A DNA stretch of 64,000 nucleotides from Octopus bimaculoides (GCF_001194135.2 NC_068983.1:42766481-42830480); one strand, 5' to 3'; shown: positions 15,591-53,290, numbered from the stretch's first letter. The notes: a model not told the origin generated them from the letters alone. A program made the numbers and translations.

Positions 15591-16090
15591 CTTTGCATAT
15601 ATGCATTGTGGCACTGCCTTGTTTTGTATTTAGCAACAGGTAAGCTCTGATCAAACAGAACCCTAATCCAAAGCATTCTAGCCAGGAACGTACTTTTTCT
15701 CGCTCTCAGACATTGTGTATCAAAGACCATATCATCTGCCGTTTTTCATTTTTCAGGATAGTAAGATGTGATTTGAAAGAGATTTGGCTTCAATTTCTAG
15801 CAAATTGAACAGCCACTTGATGGTTCCCTTGTTCACCTTAAATCTACAATTTTTCTGCATAGATTTACGTAAAACATTAATTTTTGAAATAATTTCCTCA
15901 GAAACTTGTCTTGCAAGAAACATTTAAATTTTATCTCATTCACAACTAAAGTGGAGATAACTGTGTATTATAAATAGGGACAAGGGAAACAACTCGGCCT
16001 TCTATTTATTACTATTAATATTTAGCAAATAAAATAGTGGCTAAGTTACATGTCGTAAAGCCCCTTGAAGCTAACCTAGTTACTTTGGTT

Positions 16091-16150
16091 GCGTCAGTTA
16101 CTTGATATTCTGGGTTTCGCCTGTGGATGCCCAGGGTCGTCAGGTAAATT
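16091..16150 (-). ncRNA. Degenerate hammerhead-ribozyme-like motif
   Basis: Minus strand reads CUGACGA-c-CCUG-ggcaucca-CAGG-c-GAAAC. Stems I and III are not clean. Confidence 0.45.
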
Positions 16151-16337
16151 AGTTACTATGTATATGCAGGCGAAACTAAGAGTAGGAGGAGACTGACTCA
16201 AACAAAATAGAAATACCAAATCTCTACTATGGTAACAAACGTTCTTCTGACGGTCAACACTCAAAGGATATATACACATACACACAGACACACACTAATT
16301 GTATATACAAGAGTAAATTATATATATATATATATAT

Positions 16338-17951
16338 AAAGTTAATTGCAGAATAAAACCGTTAGTTCATGAACTCAAAAAAAGCCGTAGCCCACCAATA
16401 ACCACATATAAGAAGTACAGCATAGACCACAAAACCAAATTAGCAAAGGGAAGTCAAAATTTTTATACATAAGAATAAAAATCGATTAAAAATACAATAG
16501 AATAATATAAATAAATAAACTGCGATTAAAAAGTTGATTAAAATATTAGAGACCGGTACAAATATAGTAGAATAAAAATATATATATATAGAAAAAATAT
16601 AGGGNNNNNNNNNNNNNNNNNNNNNNNNNNNNNNNNNNNNNNNNNNNNNNNNNNNNNNNNNNNNNNNNNNNNNNNNNNNNNNNNNNNNNNNNNNNNNNNN
16701 NNNNNNNNNNNNNNNNNNNNNNNNNNNNNNNNNNNNNNNNNNNNNNNNNNNNNNNNNNNNNNNNNNNNNNNNNNNNNNNNNNNNNNNNNNNNNNNNNNNN
16801 NNNNNNNNNNNNNNNNNNNNNNNNNNNNNNNNNNNNNNNNNNNNNNNNNNNNNNNNNNNNNNNNNNNNNNNNNNNNNNNNNNNNNNNNNNNNNNNNNNNN
16901 NNNNNNNNNNNNNNNNNNNNNNNNNNNNNNNNNNNNNNNNNNNNNNNNNNNNNNNNNNNNNNNNNNNNNNNNNNNNNNNNNNNNNNNNNNNNNNNNNNNN
17001 NNNNNNNNNNNNNNNNNNNNNNNNNNNNNNNNNNNNNNNNNNNNNNNNNNNNNNNNNNNNNNNNNNNNNNNNNNNNNNNNNNNNNNNNNNNNNNNNNNNN
17101 NNNNNNNNNNNNNNNNNNNNNNNNNNNNNNNNNNNNNNNNNNNNNNNNNNNNNNNNNNNNNNNNNNNNNNNNNNNNNNNNNNNNNNNNNNNNNNNNNNNN
17201 NNNNNNNNNNNNNNNNNNNNNNNNNNNNNNNNNNNNNNNNNNNNNNNNNNNNNNNNNNNNNNNNNNNNNNNNNNNNNNNNNNNNNNNNNNNNNNNNNNNN
17301 NNNNNNNNNNNNNNNNNNNNNNNNNNNNNNNTAATGCATAATAAGCACTTGCTAATATTAGCCTTAAATTGGGGGGTTCTAGATAAGATTGACCATTCAA
17401 GAGAGTACTTCTTATTCTTCCTCTTGAGGTCATGCAGGTAAGAGGCGAGTGTTGTGGAATTATAATATTTCTCATTAGAAAAGGAACTCTTGTGCAGCCT
17501 ATACCTGGCTTTAAAATTCACTGAACTTCCAATATAAAACTTATTTTGTTTGTCCTCGTCTCTAACTACACATTTATACACTACGTTTGTGGACAAACAA
17601 AGTCCGCCGAGAGGACATAAAGAAGGGTCCCTACAATTACATAATTTTTTACGGCCACTCTTAAAGTCATTTCCAATATCATTAACCGCCCTCAGAAATT
17701 TATTCTTATCAACCATTCCACTTATCTCATTCCCAGATTTAGGCATAATCCGAGGGAATGAAGAGCCCGTTCCACTATCATCGTGTGGTTTACAGTTGGT
17801 TTTATTAGAAAAAGGGTTTCCCTGAGACAGACATTCGCATAGCTTTAACTTATTTATTTTATTCCTATTTAAAGAGGCAATATATGTGGTTATTGGTGGG
17901 CTACGGCTTTTTCAGTCGATGACCTAACGGTTTTATTCTGCAATTAACTTT
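16338..17951 (-). mobile_element. Penelope-like element fragment: GIY-YIG ORF between 71-73 bp inverted repeats
   Basis: IR arms at 16338-16410 and 17881-17951. The first 28 nt and last 27 nt are identical. The left arm abuts a (TA)n run. No TSD seen. Confidence 0.75.
17332..17746 (-). CDS. GIY-YIG endonuclease of PLE type with CxC-x5-C-x5-C motif (3'-partial, enters gap)
   Basis: MPKSG...CNCRDPSLCPLGGLCLSTNVVYKC...KFYIGSSVNFKARYRLHKSSF...STTLASYLHDLK...EWSIL...KCLLC shows the VVY and YIG half-motifs, the conserved Arg and His, and a C-terminal CxxC. The frame has no stops from 17911 to the gap. Confidence 0.9.
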
Positions 17952-18038
17952 GTACCTATGTCTCAACTAGTTTGAGCACTTCTTTTACAGCCTTGTATAA
18001 ATTCTTGGTTTTCTAATACAAAACTGTTAATATTGAAT

Positions 18039-18076
<38 letters not shown>

Positions 18077-18900
18077 TGATTTTATATACCTGAGCAGGTG
18101 TCTTCCCAACAAGATACTATCAGCTGCTCGTATGTGCATTAAATGATTTATCTCTCACTAGTTGAAGTACTCTTTTTGTTGAGCTTATCTTAATGGAACA
18201 GTAAATTATATCATCATCATCACACACAGAGTATTTAGGATTCATAATATAGATCACGATAAAATCAAAAAGTGATCTGAGTTTCATGTGACTGAGATAG
18301 GAAAAGTCTTGTATTTGTTGAGCTCTAGATCATTGCTTATCAAGGCAGCCTATGATTAAAGACATCCATGCAATGACAACCCAGACTTTTGGCAGGCATC
18401 GTTTATATAGGATTACATTAGACTATGTCCTTTTTTAACATGGTAGGATGTCATATAAGTTACAGGTGCTATTTGTTGTAGGCTGAGCGATCACTTAGAA
18501 CAGGAAAGGTACAAGGTCAAAGAACATGTCTTGGCAAATTTCATCTGACCAATGCCAAAATGGAAAAGTGGTAATTATAACGTGTGTGTGTGCAAATATA
18601 CACACACACACATACACATCATCCACCCATGTCTCCGTAAGTGCTGGATGGCAATGTGGATACAGGTTTCTCTTTGTAACTCCAAAAGCACAGTCTCAAG
18701 TTCTATCTCACAGTATGGAACAAACTAATACTTTGTGAGTGGAATTGTTAGATGGAAACAATAACAGGAATCCATCATGGACAGATATGCTTTTCTCAGA
18801 GGAAAGAAAACAAACAGCATCACTTGCAGGAGCCATGATTCTTTACAGCCATCATCTGACGTCAAGGCAAGGGTACACACTAACACACACACACATGTAA

Positions 18901-18932
<32 letters not shown>

Positions 18933-19199
18933 NNNNNNNNNNNNNNNNNNNNNNNNNNNNNNNNNNNNNNNNNNNNNNNNNNNNNNNNNNNNNNNNNNNN
19001 NNNNNNNNNNNNNNNNNNNNNNNNNNNNNNNNNNNNNNNNNNNNNNNNNNNNNNNNNNNNNNNNNNNNNNNNNNNNNNNNNNNNNNNNNNNNNNNNNNNN
19101 NNNNNNNNNNNNNNNNNNNNNNNNNNNNNNNNNNNNNNNNNNNNNNNNNNNNNNNNNNNNNNNNNNNNNNNNNNNNNNNNNNNNNNNNNNNNNNNNNNN

Positions 19200-19232
<33 letters not shown>

Positions 19233-19234
<2 letters not shown>

Positions 19235-19454
19235 TATTGAACCTTGGAAAGGTTATTACGACAGTAATAATAAACACACACACTGGTTCAGTCCTTTATT
19301 GTTTTTATTCAGTATTTTTCGTGCTAATTCTTTTCCTTTTTTTTATTTTGTCAAATACAAAAAAAAAAACACGAACAATACTAATTCATAAAGGACCAAA
19401 CCAGTGCGTGTGTTTATTATTACCGGTATAATGCCCCTCCCAAGATTCAATAGT
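19233..19454. mobile_element. Foldback (palindromic) element with asymmetric tail
   Basis: actattgaaccttgg...ctggttcagtcctttat pairs with ataaaggaccaaaccag...ccaagattcaatagt. It is followed by ttcaacacacaaattcaca, which also follows the 36657-36883 palindrome. Confidence 0.75.
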
Positions 19455-21373
19455 ATTTCTTTCAACACACAAATTCACATCAAGAACCTTGCAAACCAAA
19501 TACAAATACGAATTATATATACAAAATTCGTCTGCCACACGACTGAATTTACTTCTTTTACACAATGAAAGCGACAGAGATTGTGTGGTTTTCAATCATT
19601 TCCACCAAAGAGGAATAATGATATCAGTAAAATAAAATGTGAGTGCCAATAATATCTGGTTCTGGTCTTGAGTTGGTTGTGACCGAAGTTTTCGACCATG
19701 GTTGTTTCAGCAGTTAAAGGGAAGTAACTCAAACAGTCTAACCAATTCAGAGCCTTGTGATTAGGTTTGGTGGGTGCAAACTGAAAGAAGCGTGTCATAT
19801 ATGCGCATGCGCTTGTTTTGCTTCTTTGTTTTGACATCTGAAGTAATTTTTGTAAATGTATGTCATCCATTTCCGATATTCTGCAAAAACACGTCCAACT
19901 CTGGGGAAAATATTACTTTTCTTGGAAACAGATGAAGTTTGTCGACAGGAAGAGCTTCCAGTCATAGAAAAATATGCAAAATTGCAGTCTTGGCAGATAC
20001 CAGTGTCACGCAAATAGCACCGGTGCTGGTTTCACGTAAAAGCACCCTTTACACTCTTGGAGTGGTTGGCATTAAGAAGGGCATTTCAGCCACAGAAAAC
20101 CATGTCAAATCAGACAGCAGTTGGGTGTGGCCTCCCAGCTTGCCAGCCTTGATCAAACTGTCCAACCCATGCCAGCATGGACAATGGAAGTCAAATGATG
20201 ATGAATAAAGATGGAAGGAATTTTACTTTTTATAATTTGATATTTTCCTAAATTCTATGTAAGCACGTCACTTAGTGGTTAGGGTATTTGGCAAAAAATT
20301 GCAAGGTCACGAGTTCGATTCCTGGTGTCTCGTGTAAGACACTTTATTTCATGTTGCTCCAGTTCACTCAGCTGGCAAAAATGTGTTGTACCAGTATTTC
20401 AAAGGGGCTCCTCTTGTCACATTCTCTTGTCATGCTGAATCTCCCTGAGAACTACGTCAAGAGTACATGTGTCTGTGGAGTGCTTGCACTTTAATTTCAT
20501 GAGCGGGCTGTTCCACTGAGCATATCAACTAGAACCCTCATCTTTGTAACCAAGAGTCATCATCATCATCAAAGTGACAGTTATAAATTATAGGAAGGAT
20601 TCTGCAGAGTGAGTTTATTGAAACTTAAGATCAACATGAACGCTATTAGAATAATGTAGACACACATCTCCCTGATCTAGATGACTAAATGATACATTTG
20701 AACCAAGAAATTCAAAGATGCTATGCTTGAATTAAAAGAAATTCAGTCCTTGAATTTGTGGCGGAAATGTTAATCCTTGTAGGAACTCAGAACAGACATG
20801 CTAACCTTTCATTTGACACGGGACCACCTCCTCCAATTCTCCCTCCCCTCACAAAGGATCTTTGTCTTGCAAGTTACCTGGTGACCCTGCCAGTGCAGGT
20901 GCCACTTAAAAAGCATCCAGTCCATACTGTAAAGTGGTAGGCATTTAGAAGGGCCTCCAGCTGTAAAAACCTTCCTAAAACTGACCTCACCTGTGCTTGT
21001 GCCATGTAAAAAGCACTGTCCACTCTACTGGGTCGCTGGTGTTAGGAAGGGCATCTAGCTATAAAAAACCCTGCCAAAACAAAGTCTGATGCAGGATCGT
21101 GCCTGACCAGCTTCTGTTAAACCATCCAACCCATGCCAACATGGAAGGACGTTAAACAATGATGATAATGAATAACAGTTTTAAATTTTAGCACAAGGCC
21201 AGCAAGGTCGAGGGATGGAGTAAGTCAATTACATCAACCCTGAAACCGATTTTATCGACCCTGAAAGGATGAAAGGCAAAGTCAATCTTGGCAGAATTTG
21301 AACTCGAAATGTGAAGAAATACGCATTGCTGCTAAGCATTTTACTTGGTGATTTTTGTCAGCTTGTTACCTTC

Positions 21374-21406
<33 letters not shown>

Positions 21407-21749
21407 CCACCATTGAAGTATGAAACTGCTATTTGTGACATACATTCTTCATCTAACTAAAACAAATGATAAGGATGATGTCATAATAATTAACAAAAAA
21501 AAAACATTGACACAGAAAGAAAGACATTAGTGAAATCTGAAAATAGCCAGAATAAAGTCTGTAACAGAAACCAGATGGCCTGAGTTGATGGTGCCAATTG
21601 TGGTAATAATGGTAAATCCAGGAGAGTCGGCCGAGTATCTCATCTGATTAAATTTCTGTATATATATCAAGTATCTTCTACTATCTAGCCTTGGACAGAT
21701 CAAAGTATTGTGAGTGGATTTGGTAGACAGAAACTGAAAGAAACCTGTC

Positions 21750-21796
<47 letters not shown>

Positions 21797-21798
<2 letters not shown>

Positions 21799-21978
21799 CG
21801 TGTGTGTGTATATTGAGGCTGTGTGACAAGAAGCTTGCAACCCAATTACATGGACCTGGGTTCAGTCCCACTGCGTCGCATCTTGGGCAAGTGTCTTCTA
21901 CTATAGCCTTGGGCCCAGTCTGGCCCAGTCTTGTGAATGGATGTAGACAGAAACTGAAAGAAACCTGTTGTGTGTGTG

Positions 21979-22013
<35 letters not shown>

Positions 22014-22171
22014 TGAGGCTGTGTGGTAAGAGGTTTGCAACCCATCCACATAGATCTGGGTTCATTCCCACTGTTGCACCTTGGGCAAGTTTTCTTCTGC
22101 TATAGCCTTGGGTTTAGCAAAGCCTTGTGAGTGGATATGGTAGAAGGAAACTGAAAGAAACCCATCACATA
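21797..22171 (+). repeat. Tandemly duplicated SINE family A heads
   Basis: Two consecutive units of about 210 bp, both starting tatattgaggctgtgtg and separated by a (TG)(TA) microsatellite. Confidence 0.75.
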
Positions 22172-23477
22172 NNNNNNNNNNNNNNNNNNNNNNNNNNNNN
22201 NNNNNNNNNNNNNNNNNNNNNNNNNNNNNNNNNNNNNNNNNNNNNNNNNNNNNNNNNNNNNNNNNNNNNNNNNNNNNNNNNNNNNNNNNNNNNNNNNNNN
22301 NNNNNNNNNNNNNNNNNNNNNNNNNNNNNNNNNNNNNNNNNNNNNNNNNNNNNNNNNNNNNNNNNNNNNNNNNNNNNNNNNNNNNNNNNNNNNNNNNNNN
22401 NNNNNNNNNNNNNNNNNNNNNNNNNNNNNNNNNNNNNNNNNNNNNNNNNNNNNNNNNNNNNNNNNNNNNNNNNNNNNNNNNNNATATATATATATATATA
22501 AATGCCAAAACGAATTTGTGTCAGCGTGTCAGACTTTGCCCCCACTCCTGCTGGGGTGAGAGTAATAATACGCATATAGACTGCGAGGGTGATAGTAATA
22601 GTATGAGCTGTAGTTATGATAGAGGGGGAGGCAATGGTGATGATGGCAGTGACAGTGTTAGCAAAGGCGTGGGGTCAACTCGTTCAACGGAAAATTCTAC
22701 AAGACAGTGCCCCAGCATGGTCACAGTTTAAAGACTGAAACAAATAAGAGAGCAGATGATGATCACCTTTCAACATCCATCTTCCATGCTGATACGGATT
22801 GGATGGCTGAAGGGGATTTGATGGGTCCAAAGACTGCATCCTATTCCAATATCTTGCTTTAGCATGGTCTCTATGGCTGCAGGTCATTCCTAACAGCACC
22901 TGCATTACATCATGTACTGGATACTCTTTCATGGCACCAACACTAGTGAGGTGACCATGTCACTTGCAAGACTAAGATCTCCTACATTTGAGTGGAGATA
23001 TAGCAGAGGAAGGCAGTTTTTATGCTAGGAGATCATCCTCATGTTTTAAATCCAAGTTTTGTCCCTGTTAATGGAGGTGGTCAGATCTACCTCAATGCCA
23101 TAGCAACTGCCCTCACACTATCTCGCCCGGCTTTAGGTTTTCAAACCAACCCTCCCAATCCCCTCCTCCACCTGTCCCCCTCCACCTTTTCCTCAGTCTA
23201 CCTCGACATTAAATTATGAAAGAAGGGGCCAGAGCAGAATAGGTTTCTTATTGTAGAGGAGATACAATGGCTACTCCTAGAAGACTGGGTGGCAGTAACC
23301 TGGATGAACTTCGAAAGGGAGATAAAATAATGGTGATGGAAATCTCAGGGTGGACTCTCATACATAATACCATTGTATTAACCTCCTCATCACCCTTCAA
23401 TGTATAAAAGACAATGCCAAATAGAGATTGGAAGGAAACTCAGTTATAGTTTGACAATTTCTTAACTTATGATTTAA

Positions 23478-23681
23478 CCCTTCAGCATTTAAACAGGTCA
23501 TATCCAACCCATATATTCAAACTAGACACATCTGGCCTCTCACACCTATCCTACAGTGTCATTATAAAAATATACAATAACATCGTTAAAATCTGAAGGT
23601 TACAAGTTAATGCAGGATAAATTCAAAACAATGGGAATAAATAAGTATTACAATTGACAAAGAAATCTGAATGCTAAAGAG
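23478..23681. mobile_element. piggyBac-like MITE
   Basis: TTAA at 23474-23477 and 23682-23685. TIR cccttcagcatt / aatgctaaagag. Partial relatives near 5830-5940 and 26816-26960. Confidence 0.75.
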
Positions 23682-24909
23682 TTAAAGAAGTTGTAAGCAT
23701 GATGGTATGGGTAAGAAGTTTTCTTTGCAACTACGAGGCTCTGAGTTCAGTCCCATTGCATAGTACCTTGGGTAATTGTCATTTAATCTATCTCTGGGTT
23801 CACCAATGCATTGTCAGTGAATATGGTAAAGAAACTGTATGGAAGCAGGTCGTGTAAGTATTTCCTCCAATCAACTCTTTTTTTTTTTTCTTTGATTGGG
23901 TTCCGGGAGGCAATCATAATGCAGTGTAAATGTGTAGATATTTATTATGGCAAAAAAGAGAGAGAGAGAAAGAAAGATTAGGATTTCTTCTTTCTATAAC
24001 TGGCATTTGGTTGGTCCTTCCATTTTAATAATGAGCAAGGCAGAGAAAAACTGTTTCATAATTAGCTACTTCATCGCAATAATAATGACAACTGTAAACA
24101 GAAACATTCCTAGTGTTTGTTCAACATCATTAGTTGTAAGATGACAGAATTGTGTGACACTGGTCATCACATGTTCTGTATTGAAAATGGTGAACCAGAA
24201 GAATACAATAAACTAAGCATACATTTCTTTTGCTTTAGTAAATAAACATGCATGCCATTGGATAACGGATGTAACGAGCAACCAAGAGAAAAGAGAAAGA
24301 ATGGAGAAAAAAAACGAAATTTCCATAAAGATGTGGATTTGGAAAGGAACTGACATCAAAATCTACAGTGTGGAAAACAAACAGATTGATTCAACATTCT
24401 CGCTCTCTCTCGTTATATTTCTATGTGAGAGAAAAAGTCTGAGAACATTCTTTGTTGCTTCAAAGGAAAAATTATATCTTGACTAGCAGGATTCAGTGAA
24501 TATTTCACAGAATTAATGGTAAACCTATTGAGTTATTTCTGAAAACTTTATCCAAAAAACCTGAAAGCATAGCTTGTGTTCTGTCTATGGAAAGACAGTC
24601 GCTCATCTGCTATTCATTGAAAAGTGAAAGAAACTGGAATATGATGATTACTTAATGCACTTTATATATACACTTTATATACTTTACACACAATTTCATA
24701 GACTTAATACACGGCACTCATAAATATTCACTCTTATTTTTCCATTTTTCCCATAAAGAAAAAAAAAACTCATACATGATACAACCTTTAGTTAAATTGT
24801 ATATATCTGCCATGTAAATAAGCATGAATATTTCACGGAATTGCACTTATGCACATGCATTAAGTGATAGGTGATATGAAAAACTTAGTTCAATTAAAAA
24901 AAATATACA

Positions 24910-25293
24910 CAGGAATGGCTGTGTGGTAAGTAGCTTGCTTACCAACCACATGGTTCTGGGTTCAGTCCCACTGCATGGCACCTTGGGCAAGTGTCTTCTA
25001 CTATAGCCTCGGGCCGACCAAAGCCTTGTGAGTGGATTTGGTAGATGGAAACTGAAAGAAGCCCGTCGTATATATGTATATATATATATATGTATGTGTG
25101 TCTGTGTTTGTTCCCCCACCATCGCTTGACAACCGATGCTGGTGTGTTTACGTCCCCGTAACTTAGCGGTTCAGCAAAAAAGACCGATAGAATAAGTACT
25201 AGGCTAACAAAGAATAAGTCCTGGGGTCGATTTGTTCAACTAAATGCGGTGCTCCAGCATGGCCACAGTCAAATGACTGAAACAAGTAAAAGA
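24910..25293 (+). mobile_element. tRNA-derived SINE family A, full length
   Basis: Head gagtggctgtgtggtaag..ggttcagtccc (A/B-box-like), internal (TA/TG)n, tail gactgaaacaagtaaaag. Near-identical copies at 28811-29210 and 48061-48455, plus many older copies on both strands. Confidence 0.85.
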
Positions 25294-26282: not shown

Positions 26283-26588
26283 CAGTGGTTCCCAAACTTT
26301 TTCAAGCTGCCGCATCTTTAGCACCCAGGCCACATTCCTAGCGCCCCCTTACCCTCCCCACCACAATATAGACCACCTCCTGCAGCAAATTCAAAACAAC
26401 CGTATCTTACAAATAAAACAAACCTAATTAACCTATCAATACTTTTTTTTTACATCTATCACCCCATTATCATCCCCCCCCCNNNNNNNNNNNNNNNNNN
26501 NNNNNNNNNNNNNNNNNNNNNNNNNNNNCCCCCCCCCCACCCCCACACACACACAAGGTAGCAGTACTGCTCACTTTGGGAATCACAG
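26283..26588. mobile_element. hAT MITE
   Basis: TIR cagtggttcccaaa / tttgggaatcacag with a perfect 8-bp TSD ttttaaat (26275-26282 and 26589-26596). Confidence 0.85.
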
Positions 26589-26969: not shown

Positions 26970-27146
26970 TCTTTTATTCTTTTGTTTCAGTCATTTGACC
27001 GTGTCCATGCTGGAGCACGGCCTTTAAGACATTCTTTATAAGCCTAATAATTATTCTATCGGTCTTTTTTGCCGAACCGCTAAGTTACTGGGATGTAAAC
27101 ACACCAGCATTGGTTGTCAAGCAATGGTGGGGAGGGTGGGACAGAC

Positions 27147-27190
<44 letters not shown>

Positions 27191-27462: not shown

Positions 27463-27608
27463 TTATTAAAGCTGCAAAAAAAAAAAAAAAAAAAAACTGT
27501 TACTCAGAGTTTCATGCTCCCATTTATCAGACTGTCCGACAAATGGGAACGTGAAACTGAGAAACAGTTTTGTTTTTTTTTCTCATGATGTTTTAGCAGC
27601 TTTAATAA
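27463..27608. mobile_element. Palindromic element with twin hammerhead-like motifs
   Basis: Arms ttattaaagctgc...catttatcag and ccgacaaatggg...gcagctttaataa meet at the 5-nt centre actgt (27531-27535). Confidence 0.75.
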
Positions 27609-28970: not shown

Positions 28971-29025
<55 letters not shown>

Positions 29026-29907: not shown

Positions 29908-29939
<32 letters not shown>

Positions 29940-36619: not shown

Positions 36620-36656
36620 CATACATACACATATGTATATGTATTTATTTATTTAT

Positions 36657-36883
36657 TATTGTGTCTGGGGAAAGTCTCTTTTAATGCCTTATTAACACTC
36701 ACGAGTTCGATTTCCACTCATTTATTCATTTTTTTATAAACTTTTCAACTAAAAACAACTATTGAAAAGGTTGCAAGATGCAACGAAAATTTTTAAAAAC
36801 AATTTAGTAAATGAGTGGAAATCGAACCAGTGAGTGTGTTAAGTAATAAGGCACTAAAAGAGAATGACTCTTCCCAGACAATA
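36657..36883. mobile_element. Foldback element with a hammerhead-like remnant in the right arm
   Basis: tattgtgtctggg...ttccactcattta pairs with taaatgagtggaaa...cccagacaata. The right arm has ttgaaaa-g-GTTGC-aagat-GCAAC-GAAA (36762-36788). Confidence 0.7.
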
Positions 36884-37978
36884 AAACATGCTTCAACACA
36901 CAAATTCACATAAAGAAACTTGTAAACAAATTACAAAAAACTATGAAATATATATATGTATTCATTCAATTATTTGATTGCTTGGTTCCGTTAGACTGTG
37001 GCCATGCTGGGGTACCATCCTGAATTTTAGTTAAATGAATCAACCCCATTACTGATTATATTTTAAAGCCTGGTACTTATTCTATCAGTCTCTTCTGCTG
37101 AACCACTACATTATGGGGATGTAAACACACCAACATGGGTTTTCAAGTGGTTGTGTGAGACAAACACACACACATTCAAAGGGCTTCTTTCAGTTTCCGT
37201 CAACTAAATCCACTCACAAGGCTTTGGTCGACCCGAGGCTATAGTAGAAGACACTTGCCCAAGGTGCCACGCAGTGGGACTGAACCTAGAACCATGTGGT
37301 TGGGAAGCAAGCTTCTTACCACATAGCCACTCTTGCACCTTATATATTTGTAATTATTGTACAGAAACATATTGTTGGAACAGTCTCAGCATCATTATAA
37401 ATTATTCAAAACATTTCTATTTTGGAATTCTAAATTTATTTTTTCTTGCTTTATTCTCATTGCAGATATTCAAAGTAATAAAGAATGGAAGTATGTACAG
37501 AATTCTTGGAGACATAAAATATATGTAAGTATATATCTGCAATAATTGGCATCAAATGAATAAAACCATAGGTATTTCTGAATAAAAAGAAAGCAATATA
37601 TTTAACCACTGAAACTAGAATTAGTAATTGATGATAATGATAATTAATAACTTGTAGGCACATGAAATTTCGTTAAGCAACTATAATATACTATAAAGTA
37701 TATTAAATATTTTTATAAGTCAACACCATGTCCTACTGTGTTAGCAGTGCTCTTTACATTATTTTGTGAAAGTTATTTCTACAGAAATTATAACCAACAC
37801 TCATTGCTACAAAGTTTCATATCGAGACGTCAGATGTAAACAAACGAGATGTTAGACAAAAATTAGGTAATGAATGTATATGCCATATTTCGGGGNNNNN
37901 NNNNNGTGTCCTGTCATCAATGAAACACTTTAGCAAAAAAGTTAGTGTTGGCTATAATTTCTTTACAAATAACCCTAT

Positions 37979-37979
37979 G

Positions 37980-38029
<50 letters not shown>
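37979..38029. repeat. (TAA)n microsatellite
   Basis: Directly visible. Confidence 0.95.
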
Positions 38030-42739: not shown

Positions 42740-44466
42740 TGAGTGCATGTGTGTATAAAATTGACGGTATGTTAAAGCTAGTTTTAAATGTGTGTAGCTG
42801 TATATACACACATTATATATAAAATAAATTATATATAAATGAAACATATATAACAAGTAAAAAGCACCATTCAAGCATGGGTCATTGCCCATGCCACCTG
42901 ACTGGCTCCCATGCCAGTGGAACACAAGAAGCACCATTCAAGTGTGGTTGATGCCAGTGCCGCCTGACTGGCTCCTGTGCCAGTGGCACATAAAAAGCAC
43001 CCACTACACTCTCGGAGTGGTTGGCATTAGGAAGGGCATCCAGCTGTAGAAACATTGCCAGATCAGATCAGATTGGTACAGTCTTCTGGCTTGCCAGTTC
43101 CCAGTCAAACTGTCCTACCCATGCGAGCATGGAAGGCAGACATTAAACGATGATGATGAACAAATATATACATAACTTAATACATATATACATGCATATA
43201 GTTAAATTCAGGATATTTTAAAGGTAGATTGGTGTGTGTGTGTATATATATATAAAGTTGACATTATGTCATAGCTAGTTTTAAATGTGTGCATACACAA
43301 ACATGTCAATATACAAAACAATTTATATGTAAATGAAACATGAGCGGTTGTGTGGTAAGAAGCTTGCTTCCAAACCACACAGTTCCAGGTTCAGTCCCAC
43401 TGCATGGCACCTTGTGAAAATACTTCTACTAGAGCCTGAGGCTGACCAAAGACTTGTGAGTAGATTTGGCAGACAGTAACTGAAAGAAGCCTGTCATGTA
43501 TGTATGTCCTCCAACCATTGCTTGGTGTGTTTACATCACCATAATTCAGCAGTTCAGCAAAAGAGACCGATACAATAAGTACTTGGCTTACAAAGAATAA
43601 GTCCTGAGGTTGATTTGTCCAACTAAAGGCAGTGCTCCATCATGGCAGCAGTCAAATTACCAAAACTAATAAAAGAATAACATACATACATACACACATA
43701 CATACATAGTTAAATTGAGGATATTTTAAAGGTAGTTTGTGTGTATGTGTATATAAAACTGACGTTATGTGAAAGCTAGTTTTAAATGTGTGCCTTAACA
43801 TACAAAACAAATATGTAAATGAAACATCTATATATAATTAAACACATATATATACATACATAATTTAACACATATGTATATACAGTTAGATTGAGAATAT
43901 TTTAAAGGTAATGTTTGTGTGTGTGTATGTATGTATAAAATTGGGATTATATTATAAAGCTAGTTTTAAATGTATGTATGTATATACACACACGCGAACA
44001 CGTGTAAAATTATAAATGAAACATGGTGCCCCAGCATGACCGCAGCTTTAAAGCTGAAACAATTTAAAGAATATATAATTTTACACATTTTCTTTTATTT
44101 GTTTCAGTCATTTGGCTGCGGCCATGCTGGAACACCGATTTAGTCGAGTAAATCGACCACAGGACTTAATCTTTCGGTCACTTGTTGCCGAACCGCTAAG
44201 TTACGGGGACGTAAACACACTAGCATCAGTTGTCAAGCGATGATAGGGGGAGGGCTACAGACAGAAACACACACACACACACATATATATATATAAATAT
44301 ATATATACTACAAGACTAGAAAAACAGCCAATCGATGAAGGGTCGTTCTTTTTATCGTTTGTTTTGTTTTCCATTTGTGTCTTTCGTTCGAAAGAATAGT
44401 TCATGTTCCATGTACTCGTGCTTCGTACTTTGTTGTACACGTTTCATGACGTCCTGTGCCCACATA

Positions 44467-44527
<61 letters not shown>

Positions 44528-44880
44528 GTATAGATAGATGTAAGTATCTACATATACGTATGTATATGCATATATATACAAATTATTTATATTTTATATA
44601 TATATATACATATTATTTATATTTCTGTCTACCAAATCCACTCATAAGGCTTTGGTCAGCCCGAGGCTATAGCAGAAGATACTTGACACTTGCCCAAGGT
44701 GTCACGCAGTGGGACTGAACCCGGAACCATGTGGTTGGTAGGTAAGCTACTTACCACACACCCACTCCCGCGCGTACATAACATACACACAGTTAATTGA
44801 GGATATTTTAAAGGTAGTTTTGGTGTTTGTGTGTGTAAAATTGAGGTTATGTAAAGCTAGTTTTAAATGCGTATACACAC
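42740..44880 (+). repeat. Five diverged copies of a 130-150 bp unit interleaved with SINEs
   Basis: The anchor agctagttttaaatg occurs near 42776, 43273, 43774, 43958 and 44855. ggatattttaaaggta precedes most copies and aaatgaaacat follows four of them. Confidence 0.8.
44095..44772 (-). mobile_element. SINE family A interrupted in its internal microsatellite
   Basis: Tail half at about 44095-44290 and head half at about 44625-44772, with foreign sequence at about 44308-44470. Confidence 0.75.
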
Positions 44881-45937
44881 ACACAAACAAACACGTGTCT
44901 GTGTGTGGGAGTTTGTAACCCATTACTCCAGTAGCAGTCGTTCACTCCACTGACAGCATCGACTGGGCGTCGTCATGTAAACGAATTTGTTACAACCCAG
45001 ATTCATCTTGAAACACCTTCCAATTTGGTTTTGTACTTTACACTGTTTTAGTACAACTACTATTGCTGCTGCCGTCGCTACTACTACCACAACCACCACC
45101 ACCACCACCAACACCTCTGGTTGTACTTTTGATACTTTGATGCAACCATTGTTGCTAAGTTCACCGCCATCACTACTTTTATTATAGCTTCTACCAACAC
45201 CTTTTCATTGTTACAGCTTGTTACATCTCAGTACCTTTTATCTACTGTTACTACTATCACAACAAATACTACTCTATCACAGCTGTGAATACTACTGTTG
45301 CTGCTGCTAATAATGATAATGCCTTTTATTAATAGCCACAACTTTGATTATTACTTCCTTCACCATATCAACTTTATTCCACTCCTACTACAACGAGGCA
45401 ACAAGGGAGCCTCTATGTGGTTCTTCAATTCCTAGAAATAGCAGCCAAATATCATTTGAATCACACTTAAACCTTAAAAAAGAAAAAAAAAATGTTATTG
45501 TTTAAGCAGAGTTTTCCTGAAAATATAGGAACAGGCGCCATTGCAGCACACCACTGCATACACCATTTATCAATATCTGCTCAAGTCGTCCCAGGCAGCC
45601 CCACAAGAAGTTCCAGTCAGTTCCAGTCTCCGTAAAATATTTCCTCATCTGCTATGACCACTAGGCACGTGGCCGACCAACACGAGCCATCACCCCAGCC
45701 AGATCCTCAGATATGAGAACATAGTATGCAGGACACAGCGCGGAACATCAAGCAACATCACCAAACAGCCTAAGCTGATACCCCCGAATCGTACAGGACG
45801 CATCCCAGGTTCTTAGTACAGTCATGGGATGGATACAAAATCTGACCAATGATAGTCCATAATCTTGCAAAGTATCCAAGTACCGAAGGAGTTCAGGTGA
45901 CTCCAAGCAAAATAATAAACCCCGGGAATATTAAACA

Positions 45938-46093
45938 GGAGTGGCTGTGTGGTAGGAAGCTTGCTTCCCAACCACATGGCTCCAGGTTCAGTCCTACTGC
46001 ATGGTACTTTGGGCAAGTGTCTGCTACTATAGCCTCGGGCCAACCAAAGCCTTGTGAGTGGATGTGGTAGACGGAAACTGAAAGAAGCCCGTC

Positions 46094-46135
<42 letters not shown>

Positions 46136-46590
46136 TTATATAAGTCAGTAAATAGTGGGGTTATGCATATATATTTATATATATGCATATATGGGTACAG
46201 GACGTCACTAACGGTGCAAATAACATGAAATATGTAAATAACGAGAAGAAAATGGAAAACAGGACAAGTAAACATCACTTGTCGGTTGTCTGTCTACTCA
46301 TTTCGAGTATTCAACATATATATATATATAAGTACATATCTTATATTGTATGTATATATTTTATTAATTTGTCTGTACGGCTGATATTAGCTTGCTACTT
46401 GTGTTGGTATTTTAATAATACCATGTCCACATATACATATATATATATATAGACAGTAGTACCTCGGTTTTCGAACACTTTTCATCATGAATAAATCGTG
46501 CTTTATCTCTTGTCTTTCTCATATTCATTTAATACAGTAGTACCTTGCTTTATGAACGCCTCTGATCACGAATAAATCGTGCATTTTATA

Positions 46591-46622
<32 letters not shown>

Positions 46623-47002
46623 CACACATATAAGTACATACATATATACACACATATACATACATATATATATATACACATACACACACACATATATATA
46701 TATATACATACACACACACATAAAGCACAATTTACTCATGAGCAGAGGTGTTCGAAAACTGAGGTACAACAGTATATGTATTTGTGTGTGTGTGTGTGTG
46801 TATTTCCCCCCACACACACGCACACACAATCACTTAACACTGATGTTGATGTATTTTATGTCCCCGTAGCTTAGCAGTTCGTCAAAAGAGAACAATAGAA
46901 CGAGTATTAGGCTTACAAAGAATAAGTCCTGGGGGGGCAATTACTTTGACAAAAGGTGGTGCTCCGGCATGGCCACAGTCAAATAACAAACAAGTAAAAG
47001 AA
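45938..47002 (+). mobile_element. SINE family A interrupted by two nested insertions
   Basis: Head at about 45938-46095 and tail at about 46795-47002, with inserts at about 46150-46430 and 46454-46772. Confidence 0.75.
46454..46772. mobile_element. Tc1/mariner (Tigger-like) MITE
   Basis: TIR cagtagtacctcggttttcgaacac / gtgttcgaaaactgaggtacaacag followed by TA. It sits in a TA-rich microsatellite. Confidence 0.65.
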
Positions 47003-47150
47003 TGACATAGCCCAGACATGGTTACATGGAGAACTAAAAGCAAAACCATTTTAATGCCACTTTTGCATACAAAGGACATGTAGCATGTCAAGGAGGCTGG
47101 ATACACTTTTGCAATGGACCGAGAGGTGTCCTCATCTTGTTTGTTGTTAT

Positions 47151-47195
47151 CCCAATATTTCGGCTGGTGTATTCTCCAGCCTTCATCAGGTGTTC
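47151..47195 (-). ncRNA. Type I hammerhead-like motif (minus-strand copy)
   Basis: Minus strand reads aacac-CUGAUGA-a-GGCUGG-agaauaca-CCAGCC-GAAA-uauugggau. Core and stem II are intact; stems III and I are degenerate. Confidence 0.65.
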
Positions 47196-47450
47196 TGGTG
47201 GAATTTTGAACCCAACCCCTTTATTTGACTACACTGTTCTCATTCCTCAGGTACGTTGCTGATGTTATTTTTCTGTTGATATTCTTTCAGTGGATAAGAG
47301 CACAGGCTACTAACCCTCAGATTCTAAGTTTAATCCCAGGCAGGGACCTGAAAAAATAATAACAGAAAAATAACACCAGCAACATACCTTAGGAATGAGA
47401 ACAATGTACTCCATTAGTCAAATAAAGGGTTGGGTTCGAAATTCCACCAG

Positions 47451-47500
47451 AACACCTGATGAAGGCTGGAGAATACATCAGCCGAAACATTATGATAACA
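47451..47500 (+). ncRNA. Type I hammerhead-like motif (plus-strand copy)
   Basis: aacac-CUGAUGA(47456-47462)-a-GGCUG-gagaauacau-CAGCC-GAAAC-auuaugau. Core and stem II are intact; stems III and I are degenerate. Confidence 0.7.
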
Positions 47501-48060
47501 GCAAACAAGATGAGAACACCTATCCATCTATTGTAAATAATGAATTTGAAAGGATGAAAGGCAAAGTTAACCCTGGCAGAATTTGAACTCCAAATGTAAA
47601 GGCAGGTAGAATGCTGCTAAGCATTTTGCTCAGTGTGCTAACGATTCTGCCAGCTCATCATTTTACAGATTGTTAATATATAGATATCAATACATGAACG
47701 ACAAAAGAGATACATGGTCACATTTAATATGCTAAAGCCGTTTGTGCTATAAATAGTTGTGCAACCAGAGTTGAGATACAGTGCAAAAACTACAAAAGCT
47801 TCTTCAGAGCCATTCTGCATATACATTTGCATAAACAGAAAGATTTAAAGAACCTCACAATATGACCTAATTAACATCACTAATTTAAGTGACCTAGTTA
47901 ACAGTGTAGGTGGATGCTCTGAAAGAATAGTAGCTAAATAAGTAGAGATGGAAAAATTTTAGGGAGGGAGTTATTACCTCTAGTGGTAACAATGGGATTT
48001 TTTTCCAAACAAAGAGTAGATTGTATGGCACTTGTGTATAAACTGTTGAATAGGTTGATA

Positions 48061-48455
48061 GGCGCATGAGTGGCTGTGTGGTAAGTAGCTTGCTTACCAA
48101 CCACATGGTTCTGGGTTCAGTCCCACTACGTGGCACCTTGGGCAAGTGTCTTCTACTATAGCTTCGGGCCGACCAAAGCCTTGTGAGTGCATTTGGTAGA
48201 CAGAAACTGAAAGAAGCTCATCGTATATATATATATATATATATATATAGTTAAAAAANNNNNNNNNNGTTTGTCCCCCAACATCGCTTGACAACCGATG
48301 CTGGTGTATTTACGTCCCCCGTAACTTAGTGGTTCGGCAAAAGAGACCGATAGAATAAGTACTAGGCTTCCAAAGAATAAGTCCTGGGGTCGATTTGCTC
48401 GACTAAAGGCGGTGCTCCAGCATGGCCGCAGTCAAATGACTGAAACAAGTAAAAG
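48061..48455 (+). mobile_element. SINE family A, full length, CpG-rich
   Basis: Head ggcgcatgagtggctgtgtggtaag; tail gactgaaacaagtaaaaga. Confidence 0.85.
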
Positions 48456-49479
48456 AGAAAGAGTAAAGAGGTGTAAAATGTGGAGACTGAATATAGAGAA
48501 TGAGAAGAGGTTGGAAAACAAAAACATAGAGGGGCGTAGTCGATGGTGGATATATAAAGTTAGTGTGCTAGAAGAAATAAAGAGAAATCTGGAAAGAAGA
48601 GAAATGAGAGGAGACTGCACTGGTACAAATGTGAAAATGATGACATGTATGTTATATGGAGATGTGGCTGTGCTGTTAGGAAGCTTGCTTCCCTACCAAG
48701 TGGCCTCAGGTACTTCCCCATTGTGCAGTACCTTGGGTAATGCCTTCTACTGGAGCCTTGTGAGTGGATTCGGTAAAGGGAAACTGAATGAAGCCCATTG
48801 TGTGAGTGCGAGCATGGTATATCATCGCCATGACATCATGTGATGGTTGTAAATGAGTTTCACTGTCGAACAAGCAATGATGTTTGTTTCCAGTGTTCCG
48901 TGAAAAACAGGTCTGACTACATGGAAATATTACTTTTCTTGGAAACAAATGAGAGTTGGTGACAGGGAGGGCACTGGCTGCAGAAAATCTACCTCAACAA
49001 ATTTTCTCTGACCCATGCCAGTATAGAAAAGTGCACATTAAATAAGTACAGAAGCGAAAAATTATGCGACATGGAATTCAATTATAAGTGGCCTATACTC
49101 CGCATTGGAGTGTTAAAGGCAAGAAAGAAGAAAGAATATAATATGGAGGTAAACCATGATAGTCAGTGCACCGGTGTTTTCATGCGTGCTCAATACAATG
49201 ACAGGGTGTGGTGCATTGCTTTGTGTAATGTTTATCTCGGTCAAATGGCCAGCAATACAGGAAATATTCCATTTAGGCAAGTCTAGTTCATTTTTATCGC
49301 ATTATGCGCTGTGCTTGCAAAGATTTAAATTTTAACTATTTATATCATATCAAATACACATTTAGTGTGGGTATGTATAGACATATACACACAAAGTTTT
49401 TAGGAAGTTAATATATACATATGATGATGATGTTGATTATATATACATAAAGGTTGTCTCAGGACAATCTGCAGTTATT

Positions 49480-49930
49480 CACTAAAAGACAGTCTAATGT
49501 CGACCTTGAAAAACAAGTGTAAGATTGGTGGAATTGAGAGCTTCATTATGCAGTTACAATTGCAATGGGGTGACCATGTCATCAGAATGAGTAACAAAAG
49601 AATACCCAAAGTCCTCGTGTACAGCCAGCTTGATAGTGGGCACAGGAATGTTGGCCAACCATGCCTCAGATATAAAGGCCTCTCAGTAGTCAACATAGTT
49701 CGCAACACCTTTGAGCAAACAGCATGTGGCGAACAAAATGGAGATTGTTGTGCCAAAATGGCATAAGAGACTGTTTCGACCTGCATTAACAGGGTAAAGG
49801 GTGCAAAGCAAAGGAGAAAAGTGATTGCAAATATATTACCTATGCTGACCTTAATCCTAACACTTACAATATGCACGAGTTTTGCAAATCACTGGCAGGA
49901 CTCAAATATCACATTCAACAGATACATTAT
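49480..49930 (+). pseudogene. RTE-clade LINE 3' fragment
   Basis: ORF 49497-49766 contains IESFIMQLQLQWGDHVIRMSNKRIPKVLVYSQLDSGHRNVGQPCLRYK, matching RTE QLRWxGHVxRMxxxRxPKxxxYxxLxxGxRxxGxPxxRYKD. It is followed by a degraded zinc-finger-like FCKSLAGLKYHI near 49880. Confidence 0.85.
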
Positions 49931-50383
49931 GCCTGACAAAGAAAGTATAGGTTGTCAGATCTTCATACTTTGAAACTGATGGGAGAGTCCATTATATAGG
50001 TGCAGGAGTGGTCGTGTGGTAAGAAGCTTGCTTCCCAACCACATGGTTCTGGGTTCAGCCCCACTGCGTGGCATCTTAGGTAAGTGTCTTCTACTATAGC
50101 CTCAGGCCAGCCAAAGCCTTGTGAGTGGATTTGGTAGACAGAAATTGAAACAAGCTCATTGTATATAATGAGCCCATTTATGAATACCCCTCATTCATTG
50201 AACAATAAACCTTGCTTGTTAAGACCTATTGAGGCAAGTGAAATGAAAATCAAAATTGCTGACATGGCCGACAACAGTAGTACCTGATTGGCACTCATGC
50301 CAGTGGAACGTTAAAAGCACATCCGAACGTAGGGTGTAACCGGCCCACTTATGAGTACCTCTCATCCATTGGACAATGGAAAG

Positions 50384-50563
50384 GAACTCGGCCACTTTAC
50401 CTCAGTGAGGCCCAACGCTCAAAAACGAACTCGGCCACTTTACCTCAGTGAGGCCCAACGCTCAAAACGAACTCAGCCACTTTGCCTCCATGAGGCCCAA
50501 CGCTCAAAAGGAACTAAGCCACTTTGCCTCAGTGAGGCCTAATGCTCAAAAGGAACTCAGCCA
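50384..50563 (+). repeat. 42-43 bp minisatellite, about 4.3 units
   Basis: gaactcggccactttacctcagtgaggcccaacgctcaaaac repeats from 50384, 50427, 50469, 50511 and 50553. A single-copy version lies inside SINE B near 3325-3360. Confidence 0.9.
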
Positions 50564-52971
50564 CACACACACATATATATAGGTTTGGTGATGAAAACAG
50601 GAAATAGAGTTCAAAACATGAGTATTCATATATTTTTTATTAAAAATCAGCAAAAGCTAAGAGTTACATGCATTGGTGCTTAAAGTGTCAACACATGAAA
50701 CTTGCAGCCCTCGAGTCATTCTAATTTTAGCCAGCTATTAACACACACACACAAACACACAAGACATATACACATGCAGAGAGAGACAGACATGCAGGTA
50801 GGCAGGCAGTAATAATACAGGCAGGCACAGACGCAAATACATAAACTGACCCACACACACATATTCACAAACATACATGCAAACAGTCCTAAAGAAACTA
50901 AACAGGCATTAGTAAAAAAAAAAAAAACTAATCATGTTAGCAAGATAGACACTAAAATTAACAGCCTTCCCTCCATTAGTGTCTGGTCAATGACATTCCA
51001 TTTTAAAACTACTGCTGGGTCATCGAGACAAATATCTCTACCTTAAATCACTACAGATTTATTAACGAAGGACTGCAGATAGTTTTCAACTGGGCAGTTG
51101 CATGAAAGCAGATTGAAAGACTGGGTGGCTGGGGAGGATCACGCATTTAATAATATAATAGCAGAAAAACTTGAAGGGGAGCTTTCGTATTCGTTAGTTT
51201 GTTGGGGTTTTTTTTTTGTTTTCAATTTTGAACACTCTACTAGAGGGAGTTTTTTCTACTAATTACTATGATAACCAGTTGGTTAAAAAAAATTCTTATT
51301 TCATTATATTATACATGAGACGAGGCGTGGCTGTGTGGTTAAGAAGTTTGCTTCCCAACCATACGGCTCCTGGTTCAGTCCCACTGTGTAGAACCCTGGG
51401 CAGGTGTCTTCTCTAACAGCCCCAAGTCAATCAAAGCCTTGTGAGTAAATCTGATAAAGAGTAATTGAAGGAAACCTAACGTAGGCACAGGTGTGGCTGT
51501 GTGGTAAGAAGTTTGCTTTCCAACCAAATAGGTTCCAGGTTCAGTCCCACTGTGTGGTACCTTGGACAAGTGTCTTCTACTATAGACTCAGGCCAACCCA
51601 AGCCTTGTCAGGGGATTTGATAGATAGAAACTGAAAGAAGCCCATCGTATGTATGTATATCTGTGTTTGTTCCCCACCACTGCTTGACAACTGGTTCTGG
51701 TGTGTTTATGTCCCCCGTAACTTAACGGTTCAGCAAAAGGGATCAATAAATTAAGTACCAGGCTTAAAAAAAGATATATAAGTACTGGCATTGATTTGAC
51801 TAAAAATTCTTCAAGGTAGTGCAACAGCATGGCCACACAATCATAAAATGAGCAAATCCATCATAGAAGCAGTGATCTTCATTTCTCATCTTCTATAAAA
51901 ACATGTCTGGCTATGGGGAAATATTACCTTCGTTGGGAACAGGTGAGGACTGATGACAAGAAGGACATCCAGCCATAGAAAATCTGCCTCAATGAATTCC
52001 ATCTAACCCATGCAGGCATGGTAAAGGGGATGTTAAAACAATTCTAATTTTGAAAGGGATGGGGTAAGTTAATTACACTTGGCTGGTACTTTATTTCATT
52101 TACCCTGAAAGACTGGAAAGCAAAGTTGACCTCAGCACAATTTGAACTCGGATCAAACTGGTAAAAAATACAGCTAAGCATTTTGTTTCACACTTAGATG
52201 GTAACATTCTCTATAAAAAAAGGAATACTTCTGTCCATTTAATTGGATATCATACAAGCTGTGACCTTTCCCTTGTATTGATATAAATCAAATAGTCCCC
52301 CTATCAGATTTTTATTCCTCAGTGGAGGGGGTCTTCTCTTGTGGGTACTTGGCAACCTCACTAGTACTGGTACCAATGTAAAAAAAAACACAGTACATTG
52401 GGCATCCAGCTGGAGAAATCATGCCAAAACTGGAATAGACCCTGGCAAAAAAACCTCTGGCTTGTTTCTTGTTATCAAGCAAACCAACCCATGCCAACAT
52501 AGGAAAACAGGATGTTAAACTATGATGATGATGTGAGGAGACATCCTCTTGCTTTTTGACACACAAATGATGATGATGATGATCAATAACTTAGAATGTG
52601 TTCACATTCTAATTCAACTCACAGTGAGATTTTGTAATATGAAAATTTCAGTTCTTCTGATTTATGCTGTTGTGAATAAAATATATACTGTTTAATTAAG
52701 TAATGAGCCATCAAAAGCACAAATATGCAAATCAGGCCACCCACTACTATTGTAGCTAAATTTATGATTACTTTATATAGCAGCTGATCTATGCTATAGA
52801 TTGGGGAAGGAAGACGGGTTTGTCTTCTCTGAGGATTGGTCAACAAACAATAAAACAGCCTGCCAGGGGCCTCTGAAGAAACACGAGTCAACATATCAAT
52901 AGCATATTTTATTTAACCCACAGTGAGGATTCTATTTTGCGCATGTGTGTGTATATAAATAGATAGAGAGA

Positions 52972-53290
52972 GATTCCCCATATGCGCCACAGTTAAAGAT
53001 GAGCATATTCTCCCTCCTGAACCATCTTTAAGCATGGATACACCTGTCTTTCCTCCCTCTAAATCCCCCCCCCCCAATAGAACAACATTACTATATGGCT
53101 ACTTACCCCTCGACCACTTATATTTTTTTCCCTCTCATCCACTCTTCCTCTTTCTCATCCCACTATGCTTTTCCCATTTTTCTGATGAAGGGCTAATGTC
53201 CAAAACATGAAGACTTTTTCCCCACTACTTTTAAGCATTAAGGTAAAACTTGTCCTGCCTGTTCTGTCTTTTTGCTTTTTATTGTTCATT
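52972..53290 (+). mobile_element. Probable PLE 3' remnant with a degenerate hammerhead motif
   Basis: CUGAUGA(53182-53188)-a-GGG-cuaaug-UCC-aAAAC follows a pyrimidine-rich tract. Upstream tctccctcctgaaccatctttaag resembles a frameshifted GIY-YIG C-terminus (ISLLKPSLN-like; inference). Confidence 0.45.

Follow-up and report, generated by a model that had tools for sequence, protein, structure and literature searches.

The stretch analysed here, called the window below, comprises 64,000 nucleotides of Octopus bimaculoides DNA (GCF_001194135.2 NC_068983.1:42766481-42830480), and all positions are counted from its first letter. It carries a 5'-truncated Penelope-like element (PLE) with the remnant of a GIY-YIG open reading frame (ORF) and terminal inverted repeats (16335-17954, minus strand), together with four palindromic loci that we refer to as L1 (16081-16209), L2 (27463-27608), L3 (36646-36952) and L4 (47101-47545). 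The original prediction, made from the sequence alone, had read these loci, the GIY-YIG element and a solo motif at 53182 as one window-wide system of outward-facing inverted duplications bearing hammerhead ribozyme motifs.

The window is eukaryotic DNA of 35-40% G+C, rich in short interspersed nuclear elements (SINEs), (TA)n and (CA)n microsatellites and small palindromes; runs of (TA)5 or more make up 1.5% of it. It contains nine assembly gaps, and among the gaps listed by the program that at 16605-17331 is the only one lying within a listed element; none of L1-L4 adjoins a gap. Palindrome scores were compared with those of shuffled sequence, in which the maxima ranged from 19 to 32, and L4 (243), L3 (89) and L2 (71) were far above this range, with arm identities of 80%, 70% and 77%, respectively. 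Pairwise comparison of the arms across loci revealed no similarity, and no two loci have termini in common.

A 5'-truncated Penelope-like element with outward-facing ends

In canonical PLEs a reverse transcriptase (RT) is followed by a C-terminal GIY-YIG endonuclease (PMC8557442). The 3' end of the window element is directly abutted by a (TA)10 microsatellite (16319-16338), likely its insertion target. Its 3'-terminal 76 nt (16335-16410, minus strand) form the left arm of an inverted repeat and match the right arm (17881-17954) in reverse complement at 91% identity; this right arm is an inverted copy of the element's own 3' terminus (plus strand) joined to the 5' truncation point. Between the arms lie a distal AT-rich 3' untranslated region (UTR; 16411-16604, minus strand), of which 16560-16599 has a weak match in the 3' UTR of L001 (977-1015), a cephalopod relative; the assembly gap at 16605-17331; and an ORF remnant (17332-17880, minus strand), identified by Pfam and homology, that holds the end of the linker between RT and endonuclease, a Cys motif (CNCRDPSLCPLGGLC) and the GIY-YIG endonuclease. 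On the minus strand the reading frame stays open from 17911 as far as the gap edge at 17332. The Pfam GIY-YIG match has E = 9e-4, under the curated cut-off; the endonuclease and the Cys/Zn motif upstream of it are both present, as at the C-terminus of the ORF of canonical endonuclease-bearing (EN+) PLEs.

An exhaustive HMMER search returned 3215 homologues of this ORF at E <= 0.001 (762 at E <= 1e-10), and a word search gave two relatives, one of them a UniRef protein of Octopus bimaculoides. Residues 659-762 of the homologue P0004 (806 aa) are 56% identical to the window ORF, and the polymerase motif YRDDGL stands upstream of its endonuclease; the same is true of P0191, and other homologues carry GLYRDDGL...FLDVxLDL ahead of the same endonuclease. 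Pfam RVT_1 gave no match on P0004 and P0191, and a PDB sequence search to confirm the RT in homologues came back empty. The structure model of one relative was poor (predicted local distance difference test, pLDDT, 60.6); its best PDB fold matches were the palm of HIV-1 RT and the GIY-YIG domain of I-TevI (TMt 0.60 for the I-TevI catalytic domain), all with weak E-values.

No PLE-type RT is present upstream of the endonuclease in the window copy, which had been described as an RT-less PLE. Homology to PLEs opens with IASLNRNK at 17880-17881, precisely where the right arm has its inner edge, and this peptide is part of a linker motif conserved in P0004, the octopus protein P0002 and the alignment consensus. 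Since the homology begins at the inner edge of the inverted repeat, the element is a 5'-truncated PLE to whose truncation point an inverted copy of its 3' end is joined; the RT cannot be hidden in the gap, which comes downstream of the last endonuclease codon that is visible. Thus the link to PLEs and the outward geometry stand, whereas the RT-less class does not: this is an ordinary 5'-truncated canonical PLE whose RT is missing through truncation, and no new class.

Homologues extend about 45 residues beyond CLLCI. To judge from them, the gap should hold the last ~45 endonuclease codons and the proximal 3' UTR, where relatives bear their hammerhead. The spacing across it, 735 nt in the window and 678 nt in the relative L001, is weakly consistent with the two sides being colinear. 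No hammerhead core was found in 16335-16604 by Rfam or by the descriptor and the covariance model R1 introduced below, and a search for target site duplications (TSDs) around the element gave none. The cephalopod Logan contigs L001-L006 have nothing in common with the window beyond the coding part.

The inverted-end geometry is real but already known for PLEs, whose insertions are highly 5'-truncated with an adjacent inverted and likewise 5'-truncated copy, sometimes with a tail of 30-40 bp, and whose pseudo-long terminal repeats (pLTRs) contain hammerheads; Naiad PLEs are biased to insertion in (TA)n, and a similar bias has been hypothesised for Neptune (PMC8557442). An ENA contig from another animal (L009) offers a clean textbook case of outward-facing PLE geometry: the 5' side of its PLE has a 134-nt inverted copy, 98.5% identical, of the hammerhead-bearing 3' end, the hammerhead on each arm (3958-4091 and 6065-6198) reads outward, and both outer ends abut (TA)n. 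The window element is like canonical EN+ PLEs (Penelope/Poseidon, Neptune, Nematis) in its Cys motif and C-terminal GIY-YIG domain, in its heavy 5' truncation, in the inverted 5'-truncated copy at its 5' end that produces inverted terminal repeats, and in its insertion by (TA)n; it differs from them in that its RT and some three quarters of its ORF are gone and the hammerhead region falls in the gap.

Calibration of the hammerhead searches

Rfam scans of the whole window and of small regions (gathering score and E <= 10) gave no hammerhead or tRNA match. The hammerhead models of Rfam release 15 also recovered, at E <= 1, none of the six copies (five distinct sequences) of the type I minimal PLE hammerhead in the control contigs L008, L009, L012 and L016. 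Rfam negatives are therefore uninformative for this ribozyme type, and we dropped them as evidence against hammerheads, given that bona fide control PLE hammerheads were missed as well.

We used a descriptor that demands CUGANGA, stem II, GAAA, a helix III with A15.1-U16.1, NUH and helix I. It detected a type I minimal hammerhead 30-350 nt past the endonuclease stop in all PLE relatives whose flank reaches the motif (L007, L008, L009 with three copies, L010-L014 and L016), with the exception of L001, L003 and L004, the three closest cephalopod relatives. The flank of L015 stops inside the motif, and the truncated copy was still detected by R1, a covariance model built from seven aligned control hammerheads (A4) of about five lineages with a hand-checked structure of 12 pairs. 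Its training set shows covariation, from A-U to U-A in helix III and from U.U to G-C at the base of helix II, and R1 gave 50-60 bits to control hammerheads that Rfam had missed. The closest cephalopod PLE relative carries at L001 637-720 a motif resembling a hammerhead, in which helix II has 11 bp and helix I is interrupted; both Rfam and R1 missed it.

Over the window, with filters off, R1 produced a single significant match, at 27539-27492 on the minus strand (26.8 bits, E = 4.5e-5); the highest background score was 11.2 bits for the window itself and 14.2 bits for 55 kb of control loci with the training hammerheads excluded. No canonical hammerhead was found anywhere in the window by the descriptor scans or the covariance model search.

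The L2 and L1 palindromes

L2 (27463-27608) as a whole consists of two hammerhead-plus-tail units placed head to head, with their 3' ends outward. The R1 match is its left arm (27492-27539, minus strand), a decayed hammerhead of the PLE type I minimal form that relatives of the canonical elements carry near their 3' end. Its sequence reads ACAGU CUGAUAA AUG-GGAG-CAU GAAAC UCUGAGUA/ACAG; the core CUGAUAA (G8 to A) departs from CUGANGA and GAAA is intact, while the helices follow in type I order, with helix III ACU/AGU, the cleavage triplet GUA, and four of five pairs in helix I. From established hammerhead biochemistry, the G8 to A change predicts an inactive relic. The right arm (27527-27572, plus strand) holds a more decayed mirror hammerhead with the core CCGACAA, to which R1 gave 7.4 bits. 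An outward-facing inverted hammerhead motif had been predicted at L2, and this is borne out, strongly on the outward-reading strand of the left arm and by a weak mirror on the right.

Moreover, the 15-mer GAAACUCUGAGUAAC is identical in the left arm of L2 and in the hammerhead of L007, with 0.10 matches expected. The two arms meet 1 nt apart, just upstream of the core, and the tail of each has a T-run followed by GCAGCTTTAATAA; the flanks show a candidate 7-bp direct repeat, TACTTTA, with a chance rate of 8%. L2 is a certain palindrome of PLE debris. At 27525-27545 its two copies are joined at ACTGT/ACAGT, which is the 5' strand of helix I; in control hammerheads CAGUCUG is a 7-nt palindrome, and one may speculate that it offers microhomology for the joining of two cDNAs.

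L1 (16081-16209) is a marginal palindrome, whose score of 30 lies at the top of the range given by chance (a score of 32 came up in one of 30 shuffles). Its minus copy (16153-16097) reads CUGACGA-C-CCUG..CAGG-C-GAAAC...GUA/ACUGAC, with a 4-bp stem II that has C.C at its base, and its plus copy begins inside stem II at 16167 as CAGGC GAAAC UAAGAGUA; no helix I was found in L1. R1 gave 6.4 and 6.9 bits, the two best scores in a 221-nt region and mirror-placed, but under the window background of ~11. The control-hammerhead pattern GAAACTNNNAGTA matches twice in the window, in the right arm of L1 and the left arm of L2, against 0.18 expected. L1 and the PLE occupy one patch rich in microsatellites, 125 nt apart, and no TSD was found in a search around L1. 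As to the hammerhead-bearing inverted duplication that had been proposed, the GAAACTNNNAGTA pattern and the mirror placement speak for it, and the weak scores, the lack of helix I and the marginal palindrome against it; the probable reading of L1 is that of two very short PLE 3' ends in inverted orientation. Set beside canonical EN+ PLE insertions, L2 and L1 would be extreme cases, both copies being cut to 45-75 nt.

The L3 hairpin-repeat family

L3 (36646-36952) is a copy of a hairpin-repeat family of ~300 nt, with inverted-repeat arms and a 75-nt extension on the right. A second copy lies at 19229-19521 (71% identity over 134 nt, E = 1e-15) and has the same arm ends and extension; it comes directly after a gap and (TA)14, and its palindrome part (19233-19454) had not been listed before. 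The homology between the copies covers both arms and the right-hand extension, TTCAACACACAAATTCACAT.... Both lie in or beside (TA)n, and TA-rich flanking direct repeats, of 10 bp (36646-36952) and 8 bp, surround the whole units. Since two copies have identical inverted-repeat ends, the inverted repeat is built into the family and was not made anew at each insertion.

L3 contains no CUGANGA core and no R1 match. Its description as a ribozyme-bearing inverted duplication must therefore be given up, in view of the missing core and of the fixed inverted-repeat ends in the second copy, which the original prediction had itself named as refuting. The family is like miniature inverted-repeat transposable elements (MITEs) and foldback elements, which are also small non-coding palindromes, in its fixed inverted-repeat ends and TA-rich flanking repeats; unlike in MITEs, the common 75-nt extension lies outside the inverted repeat, which is thus internal on the right side and does not bound the element as a classical terminal inverted repeat would.

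The L4 palindrome and the solo motif

L4, the strongest palindrome, is near-complete over 445 nt (47101-47545), with arms at 47101-47290 and 47348-47545 that are 80-89% identical. Each arm carries CUGAUGA, an extra A beside stem II, a 6-bp stem II and GAAA: in the left arm (47158-47189, minus strand) this core-like motif reads CUGAUGA-A-GGCUGG...CCAGCC-GAAAU, then AUUGGGAUA/ACAAC, and the right arm (47456-47487, plus strand) repeats the same boxes. For the strand 5' of the core no helix I partner was found in either arm; a helix I can be drawn from neither, thus presumably none existed when the arms were duplicated. R1 gave the arms 2.0 bits. In the minimum-energy fold (-16.4 and -22.0 kcal/mol) CUGAUG is paired with the bases that follow GAAA. 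A type III hammerhead, which we also considered, can be drawn on paper at -6.7 and -7.4 kcal/mol, 10-15 worse than the hairpin, and this reading is energetically disfavoured. The inverted duplication claimed for L4 and the core boxes with stem II on both arms are thus upheld, and the hammerhead is not; the boxes are probably not a ribozyme.

The likeness of the L4 centre (47287-47344, plus strand) to a tRNA is confined to primary sequence and covers the part from D-loop to T-arm, with z about 5 for the 57 nt against a hand-entered set of tRNA sequences. The tRNA head proposed for L4 found no match with ARAGORN or the Rfam tRNA model, even in a search of 111 nt; nor did the centre show similarity to the SINE heads in the window. 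No further copies of L4 turned up in the window, nor did a chimeric peptide query at the protein level or a scan of JGI metagenomes for the exact pattern yield any. Two abundant SINE-type families, each present at at least 15 other sites, flank L4 directly (47547-47656 and 46825-47003), and no TSD call was made for L4 for this reason. Two readings are left for L4, that of an old foldback and that of a PLE-type inverted pair whose lineage R1 cannot model.

The solo motif at 53182-53206 (plus strand) reads CUGAUGA-A-GGGC..GUCC-AAAAC, with G12 replaced by A. Helices I and III were not identified in it, it appeared in neither the descriptor scans nor the R1 search, and its z is 0.15. It had been listed as a solo hammerhead; with A for G12 and no supporting helices, it is not one.

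Other inverted repeats in the window

At least five more compact inverted repeats that are not microsatellites lie in the window and have no motif (19233-19454, 44025-44136, 63524-63905, 37758-37987 and 58309-58630), so that the four loci are a selection. One of them, at 63524-63905, is a foldback element of ~380 nt with arms of ~110 nt and a centre with TTAGGG-like telomeric repeats (GTTAGGGTTAGGGTTTGAGTTAGGGTTAGG); it is bracketed by the 9-bp repeat TATTATATA, and (TA)28 begins 13 nt to its right. Like L4 and known MITEs and foldback elements, it is a small non-coding palindrome; no TSD was seen for L4. The hairpin at 44025-44136 is an inverted duplication of the conserved GGCCATGCTGG region of an abundant octopus SINE, and its left arm duplicates just the 5'-most part of the right-hand SINE copy; its geometry is thus unlike the PLE type. 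The repeats at 37758-37987 and 58309-58630 are two more inverted-repeat pairs, one of which spans a 10-nt gap (37896-37905).

Discussion

We consider it likely that the predicted system mixes debris of PLEs (the element at 16335-17954, L2 and probably L1) with unrelated hairpin-forming repeats (L3 and L4), and that nothing window-wide exists beyond PLE activity. The proposed tie to PLEs, with its outward geometry, is thus good for the GIY-YIG element and for L2, is probable for L1, and finds no support at L3, L4 and 53182. In the mechanism that we propose, the GIY-YIG endonuclease would nick its target, often in (TA)n, reverse transcription would begin at the 3' end of the RNA and usually end early, and a second, inverted and 5'-truncated cDNA would be joined at the 5' side, so that both 3' ends and their hammerheads come to face outward. 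Anatomy, homology, target and external control are matters of observation, whereas the joining of the two cDNAs is our inference. L1 and L2 would each be two extremely 5'-truncated PLE 3' ends set head to head. Because nothing is found there beyond hammerhead and tail, they are most simply read as PLE copies, doubly 5'-truncated and dead on arrival, rather than as non-autonomous families of their own, and the window hammerheads are predicted, from their sequence, to be mutated relics without present function.

Several points weigh against this explanation. R1 rests on seven hammerheads from about five lineages and is blind to the motif in the closest cephalopod relative (L001); it may also be blind to other types of PLE hammerhead, possibly that of L4. 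Motifs made of a core plus a stem number four in the window (three independent events) against 0.475 expected over shuffles, with a descriptor that had been relaxed after the L4 motif was seen, and a 6-bp stem II such as that of L4 is expected 0.065 times per window. The position where the window's own PLE should have its hammerhead falls in the gap at 16605-17331. L1 is not significant on its own, and L1, L2 and L4 are each known from one copy. Lastly, the association of the L3 family with (TA)n and its TSD-like repeats leave mobilisation by PLEs open for that family.

It is unlikely that the loci represent distinct non-autonomous ribozyme families, including L4 as a tRNA-headed SINE, that are mobilised by PLEs in trans and receive an inverted copy of their 3' end at the 5' junction. 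The layout of L4, with inverted body, tRNA-like centre and body and with 3' ends outward, would fit such mobilisation; its core boxes lie where the two arms agree without a mismatch over the greatest length (39 bases), and its left arm has a 2-bp helix III and AUA/A as in the cephalopod PLE hammerhead of L001. The excess of core-plus-stem motifs over shuffles also favours ribozyme families, and non-LTR (long terminal repeat) retrozymes have been proposed as non-autonomous derivatives of PLEs (PMC7229834; bioRxiv 10.64898/2026.07.22.740005). However, what L1 and L2 hold, a hammerhead and a tail, is the residue that remains of an autonomous PLE after extreme 5' truncation, L3 is without a ribozyme, and L4 lacks helix I in both arms. 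Moreover, structure-based tools do not see the tRNA head, tails are common neither between loci nor with the PLE, and the protein-route and JGI metagenome searches gave no further copies. The claim that several such families are mobilised by PLE machinery accordingly finds no support, there being no termini common to the loci, no ribozyme in L3 and no helix I in L4.

Narrowed to L4, the idea would be that of a full-length, tRNA-headed cephalopod SINE with a 3' module derived from a PLE hammerhead, inserted by a PLE together with an inverted 5'-truncated copy, the family of L3 and 19229-19521 likewise using the (TA)n-targeting endonuclease of PLEs. We regard this as improbable; if true, L4 would be a PLE-dependent SINE family whose ribozyme lost helix I. 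Sm-alpha-type SINE-like elements of Schistosoma are reportedly hammerhead-bearing, with a head of RNA polymerase III type followed by the hammerhead, and this order is the idea that they and L4 have in common; L4 differs in that structure models do not recognise a tRNA-like head in it and that helix I is missing from its motif.

Non-LTR retrozymes of metazoans, for which a dependence on PLEs has been proposed, consist of units of ~170-400 nt repeated directly in tandem, each with an intact canonical type I hammerhead (PMC7229834). They are like the units of L1 and L2 in being short non-coding repeats that bear hammerheads, whereas the window units are inverted and not tandem, shorter, and mutated or incomplete in their cores. 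We rejected identity with retrozymes on the inverted arrangement and the lack of a canonical hammerhead in the window.

The view that all four loci are relics of MITE or foldback DNA transposons, resembling hammerheads by chance, we hold to be very unlikely. Compact palindromes are indeed common in the window, most of them without a motif, L3 and 19229-19521 have fixed inverted-repeat ends and TA-rich flanking repeats, L2 has its candidate 7-bp flanking repeat, and the window is without a canonical hammerhead. Chance, on the other hand, does not account well for the left arm of L2, which reaches 26.8 bits with a model trained solely on foreign PLE hammerheads where the background tops out at 11-14, or for the 15-mer that it has in common with control hammerheads (0.10 expected), and in the L3 family the inverted repeat is not at the true right end of the element. 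To an origin of the palindromes as chimeric or fold-back joins in a short-read draft assembly we give almost no credence, and rejected it: there are nine gaps and many microsatellites, and shotgun assemblies are troubled by tandem and inverted PLE structures (PMC8557442), but the arms differ by 9-30% through both substitutions and indels where artefactual fold-backs would be near-identical, and L1-L4 touch no gap.

Taken as PLE debris next to unrelated hairpin repeats, these loci leave what is known of PLEs or ribozymes unchanged. For annotation they carry two consequences: hammerheads of PLEs need lineage-specific models, and a short palindrome that faces outward and has half-decayed hammerheads can represent a PLE insertion that was dead on arrival, and not a MITE or a microRNA-like hairpin. 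A genome-wide catalogue of such inverted-dimer junctions could reveal by what route PLEs resolve their integration intermediate.

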